A stretch of DNA of 64,000 nucleotides from Oikopleura dioica (GCA_907165135.1 OU015569.1:5208001-5272000), one strand, 5' to 3'. Positions 8,861 through 52,608 are shown, numbered from the stretch's first letter. Numbers and translations are program-made. The notes: generated from the sequence alone by a model not told the origin.

Positions 8861-8894
8861 AAAAACAGTGATATTGGCATTTTGATCATATTAA

Positions 8895-9658
8895 GGATAT
8901 AGCCTGTAAAATTCAACTTTCGTAGCGGCTAAACGCGAGGTCGGATCTTTTTCATTTCAAAAGCAATCTTACCTAAAAATGGACGGAAAATTCAATTTTG
9001 GTACTTTTTTAAAATTTTTTACTCGAATTTTTCTCTCTAAAGCGATTTGAAATCTTACGATCGCGATTTCTCAAAATTTTTCCACTAATTCGCTAAAACT
9101 AAACCGTGTTCTCTGTTGTCATGATGCTAAGCTAGAAAATTGAGGGAATAAAATTCTCAAACTCGGTCATATTTTCATTCTAGTATTCTCCTCTTTCTTG
9201 CTCTTGCTTTTCTTCCCTGCGCGCTTTATCGCGTGCAGCCAATCAAAGCGCTCGCAAAAACTCTCACGCTCTCCCGGAAAAGAGGAGGCGAGAGAGCGAG
9301 CACCGAGCGCAGCGCTTTTCATAGCTTCTGCGCGCTGAGTTAGCCTCATACAAGGGTTAGGGTTAGGGCTGTAAAATCGGTTTCTTTCGGATTAAGAGAA
9401 CACTGAACCGTCAATTTTGTAGATAAAGGTCTAAAGAGCCTATCTATCGAAAAAACTCGACCGATTTAGTGAAAAATTTTCGAGGAATCGCGATCGTAAG
9501 ATTTCAAATCGCTCTAGAGAGAAAAATTCGAGTAAAAAATTTTAAAAAAGTACCAAAATTGAATTCTCCGTCCATTTTTAGGTAGGATTGCACTTGAAAT
9601 GAAAAGATCCGACCTCGCGTTTAGCCGCCACGAAAGTTGAATTTTACAGGCTATATCC
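8895..9658. mobile_element. MITE with ~200-bp TIRs, TTAA TSD and GG...CC termini (Kolobok-type signature)
   Basis: TTAA|GGATATAGCCTGTAAAATTCAACTTTCG... at 8891 and ...CGAAAGTTGAATTTTACAGGCTATATCC|TTAA ending at 9662; non-coding interior. Confidence 0.85.
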
Positions 9659-9884
9659 TTAAATAGAAATAAATCAGGGCACGACTTTGAGAATTATATA
9701 AAAAAGGAAGTATTGGTGCTGTCTTGGCATGTTTTTGCGAAAGAGCGAGAACTGATCTTTGCGTTGTAAAGAATTGCTCGGTTGAAGAAGTGGTTTGAAA
9801 CTACAGTCAGATAGTACTGAGAAAACAATGTCGGAAAATACTGTTGAATTGTAATCGAAGCTTGTAAGAATGAAGAAAGCGGCT

Positions 9885-20377: not shown

Positions 20378-22256
20378 CTACAGTTGATTCGTCGAGTTAC
20401 CATTGTATGTTGGTCGATCAGCATCGTCTTGTAAATCAGCAATACGACGCTTTAAAAATTTTGATAAGTTTATCAAGAAGAAAAACAAGTGCTACTCTTT
20501 GAGGGCGTTGGGTCGAACTGGTCGTGGCTGGCTGCCTTGGAGGAGGTGCAGTATTTGGGCCGAAAATACTGGCAAGACCTCGGATAAGAAGATCTACAAC
20601 ATCATTAACTAGTGGTCAATCAAAAATGTTTACTAATTGGAAAAAAGATGAGGGCCCAGAGCCATCCGACAATGCCGGATTGTGACATCTGCGTGCCACT
20701 GACATCTTGAACGACTATCAGAACTGCTGAAGGAGCGAGCCCGAGATCTCTCATCGTTTTCGTCTCTTCATCTTTGTCAATAAGTCTGTTTGGCATCATT
20801 TGGCGGAATTTGAAAGCTCTTTAATATGAATTTTTTATTTCCGGTTCTTCAATGGTGATTTTCTCTCACCCTTTAACCTTATTATCGCTGACTAAGAGGT
20901 CGCGAGCGTTTTGAAGAGGATCGTCGGCTTCGAATGTATAAGTGATAGAAGCGCCATTGCCGAGGCGGATAGAAAGACGCGCTTTGCTCGCTTTAGCACG
21001 CTGAATCTCTTCTTGCTTTTCGCGTTCGGCACGCAACTTCTCCTCTCTAAGCCGATTAGTTTCTGCATCCCTCGCGGTTTTCTCCGCGTTGTAGGCTGCC
21101 GCTCGGTTCCGCTTGTCTTCCTCAATTTGAGCCCGTACTCTCGCGAGGTGTTCTGCGTCAGCTTTCTTTTCTGCGGCACGCTTATTTCGGTTTGCGATGA
21201 TCTTTAGTTCGTCTTCCTCTCGCTTTCGTCTTCTAAAAGGAAATTTTATTTTTTTCGAAAATAAAAGGGGAACTCACGCTTCTGCCATTTTCTTTCCCTC
21301 TTCTCTTCGTTTAATCTCGTCTTGTCGCTTCTTTTCCGCGGCTTCTTTTGCTTTTTGCTCTCGAACCGCATCAATTTTGCGCCTGTACTCTTCTGCCTTC
21401 TCTGCTAACCTTGTGGCTTTTTCTTCAGGAGTCTCTGAAGGTTCTGAAGTTCCAGGAGTTTCAGAATGCATGTTTGAGTTCGTGCTGCTTGAACATTCTT
21501 TACTAGGCGCGTCAGGCGTTGTCTAAAGACACGTAAGCTTTATACACCTCCACCATGACTCATTCGAATTCCTTTAATATTTAATGAACAATATTGATTA
21601 CCTTTTCGTTGATAATCCCAACTGCCGTTCTAAGAATCTGTGCTTGTGTGATTGTTCCTTTCAGCGGCTCTCTTATCATTTCACCGCCGCTGTTCATGAA
21701 GAAAATCATCGGAGTGCCTTCGATTGTCCAGAACTGGTTAAAATCTATAAACCCTTGTGTGCCCTCCTGCAAACGCAGAGCGATGCAATGTGGTTGAACT
21801 TTTGAATGCATTATTGGACTTTCGAAGATTTTCTCAACATCTTGTGAGGCTGAGTTGCTGCCACTGGCAACAACGACTTTCAAAGGAGTTTTTCAATATT
21901 TTTTATTTCGTGACTTTTGATTGAAAGGTAGAACCTAGGAATCCTAGCCTAGGATCGACAAATGCCCCCGAAATCCGGATCGGGTTTTCATCGGATTTTC
22001 TTGAAGTCTGATTTTTCCGATTGGGTTTTTATCGGGTTTTTGTAGGATTTTTCGGGTTTTTGTCGGGTATTTTTCGGATTTTTATCGGGTCTTTGTCGAA
22101 TCCAACAAAAACCCGACAAAAACGTCGGTTTTCGATCGGGTGTCAGGTGGGACTTGTCGATCCTAGGAAAGAACGAGATTTTCAAACCCTGCCTAAAAAT
22201 TTATCTTGGCTAACAATCGCCTGAATCGCTGAGGCTATATCTCCGGACCACCACAT
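20378..22256 (-). CDS. UBXN4: UBX domain protein 4 (erasin)
   Basis: MWWSGDIASAI start, thioredoxin-like domain, coiled coil, UBX (ARLSIRLGNG...F; L.DLGLAPSA.L), hydrophobic hairpin, C-terminal TYNGNSTNQL*. Confidence 0.93.
21948..22191. mobile_element. Small MITE-like insert in UBXN4 intron 1
   Basis: 14-bp inverted repeat CCTAGGATCGACAA (21948-21961 / 22154-22167), internal TCGGGTTTT micro-repeats, and a CAGGG-type end next to the splice donor. Confidence 0.6.
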
Positions 22257-40002: not shown

Positions 40003-43000
40003 CTAGTCAAGCTCGGCCCGGTAGTCCTGTAGAAGCTCAGGTGGGGTTTCAATTTAATTGCCTCAACTTACTTTTGGTCCAGCTCTTACAGTATACATAT
40101 TCACCCCACACAACCATATATTTTTAGAATCGTCTCGTCGAGCTCTAGTGCTTTATCATAGCCGATTCCTGAAAAACCTCTAAATATCGGATTTTTATCG
40201 GTTTTGTCCATTTCTGACAAGTAAAGATTGGAAAATTATATATTTTTAGAAACCTCTTGACCTCTTCTTTCTAGTGACAAGTTCAATTCGTCGGATTTCC
40301 GGTTAAATCGGTCATTTATCGGTTTTAACCGTTCATGAAAGAAATCATTATAAAATTATATATTTTCTGAAAGCTCTCGGTAAGATGAATCAGTTGAGCT
40401 TATTGAAAATCTTCTCTATCTTTTTTATCGGTTTTTATCGCACAATGGTCGTTTTTTCGACCGAGAGATCGCCAGACTCTTTTCTCGGTGAAATGAATCA
40501 TCTTTGACCAACTGCAGAATCAGGAATCAAATTTCCTTGTAAGTCGAAGAGAGAGAGAGAGAAAATAAAAAGAGAAAAAGCACTAGAATATTGATTTCTT
40601 TTCTTTATCTTTTCTTGAACTCTACCTTGAGAGAAGCCACGGAAAAAGAAGAAAGCGTGGAAGAAAATCTCGCTGGAGAAATCAAAAGATAGAAAGAACA
40701 GGAAATGAAAAAACTAGAATTGGAAAATGAAATGCTCAAAATGGAAGTTGCCAGACACATTTCTCTCGCTAGAAATTAATTTTTGGATGTGTTCTTACGG
40801 GCCAGCGGTGGTTTTTGTCGGTTTTTTTGTAAAAAAAATCGGTTGTGAAATAATTTTGAAAGAGAAATCATTCAAATAATTATTCTAGACCCCAAAAGAA
40901 CCAATTCTCGTCTTACCAAGGATGGAGAAGAACCTCTCAAAGATCTTGGATTCCATCTTTACAGTTAATTTACGTAAACTGGACAGCAAAGAAGCGGTTT
41001 TTGTTCGTCAAATGAGAGGTAAAATCAGAAAATTGCTACAAATGATAACCAAAATAAAGCAATTGCTACTGGACATTCTGAACTTCTCCCATGGATAGTT
41101 CGAGACATCGAATTCGACAAGATATCAAAAGAAGACATGAAATATTCCGAGATGGGCCAGTATTGGATGAAACATCCGAAGTACAAAGAGCTCGACAGGT
41201 GCCTAGGAGACACGAGACCTGATACTTACAGTTCAACATCGAAAAATGACGACTTGAAATCAAGTTTATGCGGCTTTCTGGAGGAGAATTCCGATCTCGA
41301 AACTCGAGTAAGAAGTGAAATCGAAGTTCTTGGACAACTAAAACGAAAGCGATACCTACGAAAACCATTTTGGATACTTCTTAGACAATACAAAGATGAG
41401 AAAATGCCCGAATGCAGCCTATCGACGCTGCGGAGAATCTATCAGGAGCATTTCTCCTGCTGGCTTTCTCTCCCCGATGATGAATCCATTCTCAGATGCG
41501 TCTGCCCCAGTCACCTACAAGTGGAACTCTTCTGCAAGGCCATCAATCGAGTTTCTTTGCGACCTGCCATATCTGAAGAGCAATTATTGGACACAACAGT
41601 ATGCGAAAACTCTGGTCATGCCTATAAATGCCTCGAAAACCACTGCACCGACTGCGACGACAGTGAAGATGGATATGCCCTTGCCCGAGCTCGCCTAGAG
41701 TTGCTCATTGAGGAAGTACCAGATGATGCGGACATAACGTATGCCTATCTATGTGAGATTGAAAGAGTCGACAGCAACAACAACAAGTACAAACGCGAGC
41801 AGATTCTCATGCAAAGTGCACCGAAGTCAGAGTTCCTGGATCTGTTGACTGACTATCTTCTGAGGGGATGCATGTCTTCTGGTGCGCAAAAGAAACTCTT
41901 GAACCACTATAAACTGAATAGTGAGTGTTACAACTTTAGCAAGAGTCTTCTCGACACCTGCACCTACGACAGTGACGCCCTTGTGATCATCACTGACTAC
42001 GGTATGAGTTGATATCATCAGATAAAGTCCTGACTAACCATCAGAATCATCAGTAGTCAGAACTATTCTAGAGAATTTTGAGAGTATCGAATAACTATAG
42101 GAAGATTCAGAGGGATAGTGAGAACTTTATAAGACATTCTAGAGCCTCCAGATCCTATGGAATAGTTCTGGCTAGCCATCAGAACCTTCCTATAAGACAT
42201 TCTAGAGCCTCCAGATTCTATGGAATAGTTCTGACTAGCCATCAGAATCTTCCCGTAAGACATTCTAGAGCCTCCAGATCCTATGGAATAGTTCTGACTA
42301 GCCATCAGAATCTTCCTATAAGACATTCTAGAGCCTCCAGATCCTATGGAATTGTTCTGGCTAGCCATCAGAATCTTCCTATAAGACATTCTAGAGCCTC
42401 CAGATCCTATGGAATAGTTCTGACTAGCCATCAGAACCTTCCTATAAGACATTCTAGAGCCTCTAGATCATATAGAATAGTTCTGACTAGCCATCAGAAT
42501 CTTCCTATAACCATCCTATACTGACGTCATATTATAGCCATGGGTGTCAGTGCCAGAGAAATCCAGGAGACGCAAACCATGCACTTCCGGAAGGATGTGT
42601 TCCCGCTCCTCTCCGATATCAGCTATGGAAAGTGTCCAGATGGAAAGCCTCGGAAGATCTACACACACCTCCTTGCAGAAGTCAGAACTCCGAAGGATCC
42701 ACTGTTCTCTCTTGCCGGAATCAAGATGTCATTGGAGCGAGCGTACCAGTTGTATGGCCCGAAAAAGAACCTTTATGTGCAGAGTGATGGAGCAGAATCG
42801 CAATTCTGGAGTGCGGAGATGTTCTATACCCTTCCCCGGTTCTTTAACAGCCTCGATGATCGATTCGACTTTGAGACAATCGTCTGGTTCAAGACTGTGT
42901 CCGGACATGGGAAAGGTATGAAAGTGATGTGGGCCATTGTTAATTTTTTCAGGTGAAATAGATTCGAGTCATGGATGTGTGAAAAGAGATCTCACCAACC

Positions 43001-44540
43001 TATACAACAATCTTGGCCGCAATGACTTGAATGGAGATGGTCTCGACGTCATTGGTTTGGTTGACAGCGCCGATGGACTCGTCAACTACTTAAACAACGA
43101 CATGAAATGCCATTTCGGAGAGCTCGAGAGTGAAAAAATGGACAGCCGAGGGTTTTATCTCAGTGGAAGATACATTTCGGAGTTTAAGCGCGATCCCGGA
43201 CTGCGAACAAGCGGTAAAACTGTCACAGGCAGTCGATCGGGACGGTTACATAATGAGGATTTATCGAAATTTAAAAAAAAAAGAATTTTATAAACCAGAA
43301 AAAGTATCATATGCTTCGTCTTTGCAAGGACGAGAATGGAAAATGGGAAGAAACAAGAATTCAATTCAAAAAACGCCCGACAGATACCTTTTGTGAACGT
43401 GTTCTCGACCGAAAAGAAGAAAAAAACAATACCTGCCCAGAAGAAAACTGCCACATGCCTTCATCCCTCCACTGGATTAATATTTACCTTAAATTATGAT
43501 TCTTAAAGTTTCAATACTATGTTCTTCAATAATAACTGCCATTAAAATAACGGAAACATTGATTTTAGTTTATCGTCTAAATATTTAGATGGTGTAAAAT
43601 GGTCTTTGGAAAGGGGAATTGCGCGCGCAAGCGCAGCTCTTCAGAAAAGCGGTTAAGCTTTAGAGCGCAGAAGGTAATCTAGTCTTCGAAGTATTTATTT
43701 TTAATAAAAAAACGATTTTTTATTAAAAACCGACAAAAACCGATAATTTTCGGACTTGAGGGGCTGATTCTCTGACCAACTAATCGGTCTTGATGAGAGC
43801 ATTCGAAAAATATATCATATCCCTTATCTTACTTTTAAACTGGCCCAAAACCGATAATTGACCGGCTGAACCGGAAATCCGACAAACTGAGACTGTGAGT
43901 GGAAAGAAGAGGTCATGAGGATTCTAAAAATATATGATTGTTTAAATTTTGTGTGTCCGAAATGGGCGAAACCGATAAAAATCCGATAAAAGCCGGCTTT
44001 TCGGGAATCGGCTATGATAATGCACTAAAGCTCGATGAGACGATTCTAAAAATATATGGTTGTATAGGGTGAATATGTATACTGTAAGAGCTAGACCAAA
44101 AGTAAGTTGAGGCAATTAAATTGAAACCCCACCTCAGCTATCCTGTTTCGGATACGTCTTCGGGTGTCTTTTAATTCGTCCTCGTCCTCATTCTTCTCGC
44201 TTCGAGAAACTTGGTACGCGGCGCTAAAAATCGACTGTAGCTCTTCATCGATAAAAAGATGTGATTACCTGATGAGTAAAAGTTCTTCTTCTTGTTTTTG
44301 AAGGTCGAAAACGATAGAAGCGAGCTCGTCTTTTCCAGCAGCCGTGAGTTCCTTGCGAAGCGTTGCTGTTTCCTCGGCGAGTGATTTCATGCTCTTTGAT
44401 ATTTTGTCGAGCTCGACGCGGTACTTTTCGATTTGGCTGTGGAACTGCTCGAAGGCGCGCTCCATGCGGCCGTGTTCCATCGCGCGGTGCTCCTGAATCG
44501 AGAAGATCCTCGTCTCCAGACTCGTTTCCCCTTCTGCCAT
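40003..44540 (-). CDS. REX1BD: REX1-B domain protein (C19orf60-like); exons 44540-44269, 44223-44133, 40035-40003; last intron is the transposon
   Basis: RIFSIQEHR...F...Y...I..S.....L.....LA.....LQ.QE.E.L; the spliced C-terminus RIAE|LLQDYRAELD* matches the REX1-B ending (I.E.LQD.RY). Confidence 0.8.
40890..43499 (+). CDS. Spliced Sola2-like DDD transposase; 5' part frameshifted or uncertain
   Basis: CxCxxH (RCVCPSH) and CxxC zinc motifs; IITDY|AMG...QETQTMHF; VQSDGAESQF; SGHGK|GEIDSSHGCVKR; GSR..YH. GT-AG introns at ~42002-42537 and ~42916-42952. Confidence 0.82.
42078..42510. repeat. 63-bp minisatellite, ~6-7 copies, inside a transposase intron
   Basis: Unit ATAAGACATTCTAGAGCCTCCAGATCCTATGGAATAGTTCTGACTAGCCATCAGAATCTTCCT repeated head to tail. 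Confidence 0.95.
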
Positions 44541-44592: not shown

Positions 44593-45977
44593 TCATTTCA
44601 GACTTTGATTCTTTTCGCTTTGAATCTTCGCCTCTAGAATCGCTTCTCTATCCGCCTTGCCAGCCTTTATAAAGTTCTGCGTCGCCGAGTTCTCCGGCGA
44701 GGCGAGATCCGGGGTCTGGACAAGAAGGGCGCCCCAAAAGCCAAAAATCAGCGTAGCCAGAGCCGTGTAGATGAACCATTTTACTTTCAACGGGTCGCGG
44801 TTGTATTCTGCTTCGACATCAACTTTGGAGCGGACGTCGATCGCCTCAATCACTTTCGTGTACTCTGGAATCGCGCGGTTCGGAGCGTAGTGCTTCGGCG
44901 GCTCCTTTTTCACCCAGCCTTCTCTGCGAGTTCGATCCTTTCCAGGCAAGGCGTATTTCATTGCTTCGCGGTAGGCGTTCTGGATTTCGTTAAATTTGGC
45001 ATCTGAAAACAATCTTCGTATTTCAAATCCCCTTCGGGTGCGCGTCAGTTAAGGCGTTTTTGCCATTTGCGTCCTTTAAGGCATTGCGTCAGTTAAGGCA
45101 CTTGCGTCAGTTAAGGCGCTGAAAAATTACTAGTGGAATTGTGATATCAACTAGGGTCTGCTTAATTACCTCGATTGTAACTATCCTTGAAATTCTCCTC
45201 ATTTCAATCTCAAATTTAACAGCGTATTCAAAATATTTAAATTTCAGATAATTTCAAATACATTGAAAACGATCTGAGAAAATTAACTAAAATTTTAGTG
45301 CCGAACCTTTATTTTTACAAATAATAAATTTATTCTATCACGAAAAACTTCAAATTCAATCATAAACCAGCGGTTCAGCTTATAACTGAATATAAAAGGA
45401 TTATCTTGAGAAAATATTAACTCTGGCACTTACCCTAGGAATTGGTAAAGTAATATTTTATCAAGAAATCAGGCAGACCCTACTTTATATCAGAATTCCA
45501 CTAGTCATTTTTCAGCGCCTTAACTGACGCAAGTGCCTTAACTGACGCAATGCCTTAAAGGACGCAAATAGCAAAATCGCCTTAACTGACGCGCACCCAG
45601 CCCCTTCCTTTCAGAAAAATAACCAATAATATTAATAAATTATAATGAAATCATCAATTTTTATATAAAAGGACGATTTACGATAATTTCAGCATTTTCT
45701 TACCTGAGTGTTGAGAGGGGTTATTGTCCGGGTGATAGATTCTGGCCAGATGAACAAAAGCGTTTCTCACTTCTGACTTTGTGGCATCCCTGGAAACACC
45801 AAGAACTGTCCATGGATCCGCCGAAATCTTCGCCGAATCTCCACCTGCGAAATCCCCACTCCGCCGGATCAGACGGTAGTTTAGCGAGCGGTTGAAGAAT
45901 ACTACAAATAACTTCGTTTAATCGGCGAAATCCCTTTTCCGATGTGAAAAAATAATTTATCGAGTCAAAATATGCAT
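44593..45977 (-). CDS. DnaJ (J-domain) protein with a C-terminal TM helix, probably mitochondrial (DNAJC4/C30-like)
   Basis: DPWTVLGVSRDATKSEVRNAF..LARIYHPD...|AKFNEIQNAY; TM WFIYTALATLIFGFWGALLV. Start inferred through a GA-AG intron. Confidence 0.8.
45036..45598. mobile_element. MULE-type MITE with ~115-bp TIRs and a 9-bp TSD, inside the DnaJ intron
   Basis: GGGTGCGCGTCAGTTAAGGC...GCCTTAACTGACGCGCACCC; flanks ATCCCCTTC and AGCCCCTTC (1 mismatch); three GCGTCAGTTAAGGC sub-repeats per arm. Confidence 0.88.
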
Positions 45978-50633: not shown

Positions 50634-52608
50634 ATGCGACTTTCCATTCGCAAGGCCAGCGCCGTTGTTGCCAACTCGGGCCTCATGAACGTAAGTACTC
50701 CTGGCAATACTCCTAGTCATGCCATTTCTAGACCGTTGCCTTCAAGGCTTCCGCCTCTGCTGCCGGTGTCAAGAACTGGAATGTTTCAGTCACTAATGTT
50801 TACGATCCGGTCGTCAAAGCTGGTTTGGGTGCCGTTGTCGAATTCCAGGACTTCATCCCCCACCGAATCCGAGGCCAGGTCTCCGATGCCACCCTTGAGA
50901 AGACCCTCGCTATCTTCGAGAAGATGCGGGCCGACAACGCCAAGGCCTACCAGATCAAGTAAGTCGTTCTTTGTTAAAATACTCTTGGATAAAAGTTTTA
51001 AGAAACACTCTTGGCCCAATCTTCCTTGAAGAAGCCAAGGCCATCGAGGCTGCCCGGACCGATGCCGTCCCTCGAATTCGACGAGAGAACCGAGCTCTTT
51101 CTAACCTCTACTACCTTTACATGGGTCCCCCACCAAAGATGACCGGCTCATCTCCCATCGAAGGTCACCGAATGTTGAACACCGCTTCCTGGATCAACCT
51201 TGTCGAACGATACCCACCAGTTGTCTCCATGCACGGTCACTTCAAGGACCAGGGGATGCCACTCAACCCCGAAAATGGCTGCATCGAGGATGTCCTATCC
51301 AAGGACCGAGTCTGGCCCCACACTGGAGAGCCCGTCCTTGAGGCCGTCCACGGTGCCTGGGCCGGCGAATTCTTCTTTGAGGGTAATTAATTGTTTGTAC
51401 CCTAAAACCAAATTCTTATTTTTACTATTAGGAGAAGATGCCGCTGGACAGACTGTCCGAATCCCAATCCAGGCCCCAGTCCCTGCCAACGTTGAGACCG
51501 GTAATACAAAGTATTGTTTTAGTCATTTTTAACCAGTATTTTAGTCCAGGCTGATGGCGAGACCGCTGTTACCACCGTCTCCCCAGCTACCTCTGGCATC
51601 ACCGAGGCTAGCTTCATCACCAACGATGCTGGCTTCCCCCGATTCACCCTTGGTCCAGTCTACGGATGGCTCCAGGGCGCCGGTACTCCAAGCCAGCAGG
51701 CTGCTGAGTATGCCGCCAATGCTGCCGTCCTCGACAAGTTTAACGGCTTCCAGTCCTTGGTAAAGGGCCATTCAATCTAATAGAGCTAACGATGAAATTC
51801 CATAAGAATTTTTCGGCAAAAAAATTTTTTTGTGAGCTATCAGCATATTCTGAAAGCCCGTATCAGAATTAGTGGAATCCCCAAATTCTAGCACTTGATG
51901 ACGTCACGATGACGTCATCACTGATGATTGAAGGTCCAGAACCGCGGAACCTTAGGTACGCTTTTTGAAGACGTTTTTGTCGAAAAAATAATTTTTTTCT
52001 TTGCAGGAGGTTGTTCAGCATCGAAAACTACACGGGAATCCGGGTTCGAACCGGCCATAACCAGCCGGTCATTTTGGCGGTTCAATTTGTAACCGGTCGG
52101 TTCGGAAAAATTCTTCCGGATTCCCACGTAGTTTTTGATGCTGAATAACCTCCCGCAAAGAAAAAAAATTGCTTTTCAACAAAAACGTTCTCTAAAAGCG
52201 TACCTAAGTTTCTAGGATTCTTCACCTTCAATCATCAGTGATGACGTCATCGTGACGTCATCAAGTGCTAGAATTTGGGGATTCCACTAATTCTGATACG
52301 GGCTTTCAGAATATGCTGATAGCTCACAAAAAATTTTTTTTGCCGAAAAATTCTTATGGAATTTCATCTAACGCTACATCTTTCAGGTCGCCATCAAGCC
52401 AGCCACCGTCAACACCTTGACTGACTTGTCTCCCTTCTCCCCCCGAAACGCCGCCAAGTTCAACACCCAGACCCTCTACGGCCGATCCAACTACGTCAAA
52501 ATGGTTTTCACCATGGTCTTCGTAAGTGCACTCTATTTGAATAGCTCTTGGCCGTCAATTACTCTTCTAAAAATTCTATTTTAGTTCCTCCTTGTTTCCA
52601 ACGTCTAA
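50634..52608 (+). CDS. ~330-aa putative mitochondrial protein ending in an ATP synthase subunit k/DAPIT (USMG5)-like motif
   Basis: Seven exons joined by GT-AG introns; strong C-ending codon bias; presequence-like start; C-terminal KFNTQTLYGRSNYVKMVF plus hydrophobic tail, compared with DAPIT YFNSYTLTGRMNCVLATY. Confidence 0.6.
51791..52368. mobile_element. Foldback MITE with ~250-bp TIRs (outer ~140 bp perfect) and a 4-bp TAAC TSD, intronic
   Basis: TAAC|GATGAAATTCCATAAGAATTTTTCGGC... and ...GCCGAAAAATTCTTATGGAATTTCATC|TAAC. Confidence 0.92.

Follow-up and report, generated by a model that had tools for sequence, protein, structure and literature searches.

The window analysed here, a stretch of 64,000 nucleotides of Oikopleura dioica DNA, contains a REX1BD gene whose last coding exon is split by a complete-looking transposon with terminal inverted repeats (TIRs). 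The locus belongs to the X-specific region of the OKI2018_I69 assembly. Males of O. dioica are hemizygous for this region. The proteins encoded here correspond to the public models XSR.g14767 (transposase) and XSR.g14768 (REX1BD) of OKI2018_I69, a long-read assembly of one single male (PMC8008620). The host gene comprises the following features.

44269-44540, minus strand: REX1BD coding exon 1 (PF14966, E 8.7e-10; homologues)
44224-44268, minus strand: ordinary REX1BD intron, 45 nt, GT-AG (homologue transcripts)
44133-44223, minus strand: last REX1BD exon, portion ahead of the insertion (83% identity to homologue residues 96-125)
40003-40035, minus strand: last REX1BD exon, portion past the insertion, 10 codons and the stop (equal to the C-terminus of four homologues)

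The initial annotation had named a REX1BD coding exon as the host, and both the Pfam match of exon 1 and uninterrupted homologues support this. Four homologues from other lineages are unbroken across the insertion point, which lies in the last coding exon, 10 codons ahead of the stop. Exon 2 aligns to residues 96-125 of an uninterrupted homologue, and the last ten residues of that homologue, like the C-terminus of all four, are encoded by what is here exon 3.

REX1BD (44540-40003) is the middle one of three close minus-strand genes, preceded by a 139-aa ORF without a Pfam match (45012-44593) and followed by a BTB-like gene (39852 and below); the same order is found in another lineage (L002). 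A gap of 52 nt separates the stop of the upstream gene from REX1BD, and about 150 nt downstream of REX1BD the next gene begins, likewise on the minus strand. Under the 500-bp spacing definition (PMC11067885) the cluster is likely an operon, and with such spacing early termination in REX1BD might also affect the downstream gene. Other inverted-repeat, MITE-like elements occur in the window at 8891-9662, 21948-22167, 45036-45598 and 51791-52368.

Structure of the insertion and its target site

The insertion and the duplicated target are delimited by alignment of the TIRs and by comparison with empty sites.

40041-44132, no strand: DNA transposon, 4,092 bp, or 4,094 bp with a 3-bp target duplication (TIR alignment; empty-site comparison)
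40041-40396, plus strand: left TIR, about 356 bp, with subterminal repeat units of about 120 bp (TIR alignment)
43777-44132, minus strand: right TIR, whose first two host-strand bases are the GT donor, 44132-44131 (TIR alignment)
44133-44137, minus strand: exon-retained target copy, CTGAG (empty-site comparison)
40036-40040, minus strand: second target copy, CTGAG, which supplies the AG (40037-40036) of the proposed distal acceptor (G at -3, U-tract absent)

The first 39 nt of the two TIRs are identical and their alignment extends over about 356 nt, well beyond the 40 bp originally assigned to them. One 20-nt word of the TIR is found twice in the window, where 0.01 occurrences would be expected, and no further copies or derivatives of the element were found inside the 64-kb window. 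The target site duplication (TSD) admits a reading of 5 bp (CTGAG) and one of 3 bp (TGA, with a terminal G on the element); the empty site and the symmetric ends permit 5, 3 or 1 bp, and a 4-bp AGCT duplication with GAG ends is ruled out by the empty site.

On the minus strand the donor side reads ...GATAGCTGAG|GTGGGGTTTC at 44133/44132, and the acceptor side ...AAACCCCAC CTGAG|CTTCTACAG at 40036/40035. The segment 44132-40036 measures 4,097 nt, with GT at its start and AG at its end; since the element begins with GT and the target ends with AG, exact removal is possible on paper. The initial annotation had placed the donor at the first two bases of the TIR, which the junction sequence confirms, and the acceptor at the end of the duplicated target, a geometry that is indeed present. 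It had also pointed out that removal of this segment restores the REX1BD frame. The restoration is exact, but as evidence of splicing it carries no weight, being automatic for any element taken together with one TSD copy, so that only the GT and the AG are informative.

Transposase gene

The element carries a transposase gene on the plus strand.

40889-41018, plus strand: transposase exon of uncertain true start, with its first in-frame ATG near 40922 (N-terminus of P0025 matched)
41060-42001, plus strand: transposase exon with a Cys-rich region and, at its end, the first catalytic Asp (TDY)
42128-42510, plus strand: 63-bp tandem array, 6.1 copies, inside transposase intron 42002-42537
42538-42915, plus strand: transposase exon with the second Asp (SDG) and a GHGK motif
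42953-43239, plus strand: transposase exon with the third Asp (EID)
43305-43499, plus strand: final transposase exon, reached via a putative GG-AG intron at 43240-43304 (the related L040 copy is intronless and reads through)

Joined, the five exons give about 640 codons uninterrupted by stops, an open frame that depends on that one GG-AG intron. At the same place the L006 copy seems to have a GA-AG intron, L040 has none, and the public model mis-splices. A frameshift near 43120 was considered and rejected, as sister elements keep the main frame. In the large exon, 119 of the 191 differences from sister copies fall at third codon positions, and 98 codons differ only synonymously against 50 with a changed amino acid.

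The predicted fold was made from the public model P0024, which is mis-spliced after residue 529; its mean pLDDT is 57.8 overall and higher in the core. Residues 300-511, the predicted core, take the RNase H/integrase fold (Z 9.6, rmsd 3.6, 143 aligned), with retroviral integrase cores as the best structural matches and with D315, D400 and D446 placed as expected with respect to strands and helix. Foldseek found nothing that reached E 0.001, and no Pfam transposase family was detected in the window or in ten aligned members. Atlas neighbours of the protein are unnamed eukaryotic clusters and DUF7869, the nearest named one. The open five-exon frame and the predicted DDD core uphold the earlier description of the element as transposase-encoding. 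Among three related copies checked for intactness, L006 has a 1-nt deletion, L039 is missing the catalytic exons, and L042 represents a fragment. With its apparently intact transposase, the window copy is a fair candidate for an autonomous element, and its recent insertion speaks indirectly for an ability to mobilise.

The 63-bp array recurs in related copies (L006 5490-6254, L039 8135-8646, L040 6215-6942 and L042 24713-25458), arranged head-to-head as a foldback in copies other than that of the window. It is 81-89% identical between subfamilies whose coding DNA barely aligns, and reaches depths of 350-700 in DNA runs, including X6, where the transposase is absent. The array looks homogenised or independently mobile.

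Empty alleles and age of the insertion

Exact empty sites are found in L001, L046 and the DNA runs X2 and X6. In a Tara contig a single CTGAG without the element is flanked by sequences identical to the window at 560 of 568 and 620 of 635 bases. Run X6 holds the empty site only, on one 8,229-nt contig nearly matching the window (0 of 436 and 1 of 668 flank bases different). Run X2 comes from the study that also supplied the run covering the window best. It tiles the element at a depth of 25-46, against 41-43 for the flanks and 13 for the empty joint, and displays no alternative letters within the unique parts of the element. X2 and X6 being DNA, the joint that skips the 4,097 nt represents an empty allele in both. 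Together with the orthologues in L002-L004, sequences without an intron at the insertion site are known from L001, L046, X2 and X6. Given such near-identical empty sites, the insertion is real, very recent and polymorphic, and still segregates with the empty allele; the empty-site alleles proposed earlier as a check are present both in wild samples and in the same-study run. The filled allele seems to be common in X2, with contig depth as a rough guide only, and the depth in this run suggests few near-identical copies of the element. In X6 a 133-nt TIR-like contig, with CTCAG ahead of it, comes from other sites.

An assembly error that misjoined the element into REX1BD would account for the break of Logan contigs at both element ends, although repeats would cause such breaks as well. 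The clean target duplication, the tiling of the element in X2 with an empty joint at about one-third of the flank depth, and the long-read nature of the assembly make such an artefact extremely improbable.

Related copies and target preference

The family was sampled by four two-ended copies from the same assembly (window, L006, L040 and L039) and three single ends from marine metagenomes; no element ends were found in L041 and L042, and a scan of metagenome contigs for the TIR word returned 32 matches, all due to chance. The L006 copy (74-77% identity) interrupts a conserved exon in an alpha/beta hydrolase gene; homologues without the interruption confirm that it is exactly removable. The L040 copy (53-63% amino-acid identity) lies in intron 2 of UFD1, 7 nt ahead of the intron end, and for the L039 copy no host gene is annotated. 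The three copies within genes are all oriented antisense to their host.

The seven targets, given for the strand opposite to the transposase, are CTGAG, CTTAG, CTGAG, CCAAG, CTAAG, CCTAG and CCAAG. Their outer C and G are invariant, which makes a 5-bp duplication indistinguishable from a 3-bp duplication with a terminal G. The element end facing the host 5' side starts with GT in 7/7 cases, and AG closes the target throughout, in three subfamilies and in wild samples; GT...AG on the antisense strand is a property of the family. At the ends L006 3450, L039 6081 and L050 right, bases 2-4 vary (GCGC vs GTGG/GTGC); the first G and the inner AATTTAAT core are constant across element ends.

Some copies have peculiar surroundings. 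A 56-codon Cys-rich open frame in L039 (5913-6080 and 9620-9665, transposase strand) reaches the element and would resume in frame past it; it has no Pfam match and no annotation. The hydrolase exon of L006 holds a 246-bp insert with GAC...GTC inverted ends (3414-3169, minus strand), 30 nt past the large element, absent in homologues and removable in frame as a GA-AG intron. The last hydrolase exon shows a net 2-nt deletion against two homologues within homopolymer runs (about 2935-2925, minus strand). This hydrolase allele is apparently decaying or a pseudogene, though a homopolymer sequencing or assembly error would have the same appearance.

The recurrence of GT and AG at 7/7 antisense ends across subfamilies and wild samples is what a working autonomous introner would display, one whose 4,097 nt are efficiently removed as a GT-AG intron to yield wild-type REX1BD and whose CYNAG target and GT end are adaptive. 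Two of the four two-ended copies lie in conserved coding exons, each exactly removable, the reference male carried the element on its X-specific region as a viable adult, and the long TIRs, being complementary, could bring the element ends into contact. Two copies out of four, however, amount to no enrichment in a gene-dense genome, and the UFD1 copy sits in an intron. UFD1 is an essential gene. As to the check proposed earlier, whether exonic copies coincide with annotated introns, neither of the two exonic copies is modelled publicly as an intron; of the others, one lies inside an existing intron and one is without an annotated gene. With the splice signals described below also taken into account, we consider this reading improbable.

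Splice signals on the host strand

Two further features of the element bear on the processing of the host transcript.

44024-44060, minus strand: proximal U-rich acceptor in the TIR, AG ending at 44046, giving an 87-nt intron and the alternative end NRLIEL-stop of XSR.g14768
43694-43724, minus strand: two AATAAA hexamers (43724, 43699), where early polyadenylation may occur

In a small, hand-picked set of 22 local introns, read by frame and partly on predicted models, the acceptor is TAG in 14, CAG in 5, AAG in 3 and GAG in none, GG at donor positions +3/+4 does not occur, and 19 introns are 65 nt or shorter. AAG acceptors are found in the transposase's own introns. The splice-like signals of the proposed 4,097-nt intron (GAG acceptor, one-T tract, GTGG donor) are unlike those of the 22. 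The distal acceptor has no U-tract, holding 1 T between -10 and -3 where 13 host-gene introns hold 3-7, and is preceded on the host strand by four U-rich YAG acceptors and the two AATAAA hexamers. The proximal site has 6 T in the same tract and a TAG acceptor 87 nt after the donor; the hexamers lie about 300 nt past the stop that this splice creates. The public annotation, which used RNA hints from pooled animals (PMC8008620), takes the 87-nt intron in XSR.g14768 instead of the 4,097-nt one, and at L006 it ends the hydrolase gene inside the TIR, with the element not spliced out. Splicing at the proximal site, too, is a prediction.

Across the family, a pyrimidine at acceptor position -3 (YAG) is present at 2/7 targets, and donor positions +3 to +6 vary (GGGG, GGAG, GGAC, GCGC) independently of local donors; these two observations give no sign of selection for splicing and, along with the TIR end devoid of a U-tract, count against an introner. 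All three target deviations keep the AG on one side, a bias expected by chance in 1 case of 8 and not significant. Local RNA folding at either splice site is no better than in shuffles.

RNA runs X13 and X16 represent a diverged lineage, with 11 and 51 partial reads only. The joint of exons 1 and 3 in X16, with unknown letters between them, attests REX1BD mRNA in that lineage and not splicing of the element. In pooled RNA, an exact-junction read from an empty allele is the same as one from a spliced filled allele; as near-identical empty alleles exist, such reads prove nothing.

Another reading is that of a leaky proto-intron. Here a minority of transcripts would carry the exact junction and the rest would use internal acceptors, selection against the insertion being softened, and copies at TAG targets, such as L006, would splice better. 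The donor stands in an AG|GT context and is accepted by the public model; splicing of transposons via their own or nearby latent sites is a recognised route (PMC3443670). The 4-kb antisense transposase gene with polyadenylation signals between the two sites speaks against it, and we regard a proto-intron of this kind as unlikely.

Discussion

By its general features the window element would work like introners, which combine TIRs and a TSD, provide their own 5' splice site, borrow the 3' site from the target (Fig. 2C type) and have intron-less alleles (Gozashti et al. 2022, PMC9860276). Autonomous TIR introners have been reported from several species but are rare, most introners being non-autonomous (Gozashti et al. 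2025, PMC12130899). At the window element we find TIRs and a TSD, a recent exonic insertion with empty alleles, and removable ends. It differs from introners in the lack of annotated introns at its exonic copies, its low copy number, its weak acceptor and its length of 4.1 kb in a genome whose introns are mostly short. The initial annotation had interpreted it as the transposase-bearing master of an intron-generating family. The young TIR element with a transposase, its position in a conserved coding exon, the open frame and the recurrent GT...AG all stand; splicing and an intron-generating family are not supported, as the distal acceptor is atypical and has stronger ones ahead of it, the exonic copies are not annotated as introns and no short intron-forming derivatives were found among the sequences sampled. 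Transposon insertion is listed among the sources of intron gain in Oikopleura (PMC3443670, Table 1); the window copy is set apart from such transposon-derived introns by being full-length, transposase-bearing and still polymorphic, not an established intron.

The element appears to work like a Sola2 transposon. Compared by eye with Sola2_DFa-2 and PPa-1, it has the same order of motifs, D(F/Y), SDGA..F.S.E and W....HGK..(V/I)D (PMC3627910), and the two share a DDD triad on an integrase-like fold, predicted on the window side. Sola2 makes 4-bp TSDs (PMC3627910), against 5 bp, or 3 bp and a terminal G, at CYNAG in the window family. PIF/Harbinger, with 3-bp TNA duplications and G ends, was rejected for lack of a DDE_Tnp_4 domain or any other Pfam transposase in the ten aligned members. 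Transib elements have 5-bp TSDs and CAC termini; they were rejected too, as the window termini begin with GTG. The termini of Sola2 are GRG, differing from the GTG/GCG of the window family, or GGT/GGC on the 3-bp reading. We file the element neither as an introner, of which it has the candidate geometry only, nor as Sola2, for which the TSD test failed.

The reading we prefer, with a probability of about 0.68, is that of a young insertion of a Sola2-like transposon whose host mostly uses the proximal acceptor or reads into the TIR. The element was inserted antisense to REX1BD at its preferred target CYNAG (host strand), probably by cut-and-paste through its own or a sister transposase, and the GT of the element end and the AG of the target end may be a by-product of end sequence and target preference. 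The host transcript would then join the GT donor to the U-rich acceptor 87 nt into the TIR, or run on into the TIR, and would end near the AATAAA pair. The last 10 REX1BD residues would be replaced by 6 or 13 others, a change of the C-terminus that the animal presumably tolerates, and the exact 4.1-kb splice would be rare or absent. The uniform GT...AG at 7/7 antisense ends, the antisense orientation of 3/3 genic copies, the seemingly common filled allele in X2 and the acceptance of unusual splice sites by O. dioica, such as GA-AG introns (bioRxiv 10.1101/616565) and the AAG acceptors of the transposase introns, run counter to this preferred reading.

Intron gain in Oikopleura is large-scale, and the locus offers an unusually clean test of its source: the element is intact, its splice geometry is family-wide, a single stock has both the filled and the empty allele, and the position is X-specific. 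At most, the locus would represent an autonomous introner in an animal, arisen in a Sola2-like lineage whose ends are GT and whose CYNAG target is of odd length; a full-length copy would be exactly spliced while the empty allele still segregates beside it in a laboratory stock. We think it improbable that this is the case. If it were true, the hemizygous position would make the birth of an intron measurable in single males. Even without splicing, the locus documents a Sola2-like lineage in which the target duplication departs from the 4-bp rule.
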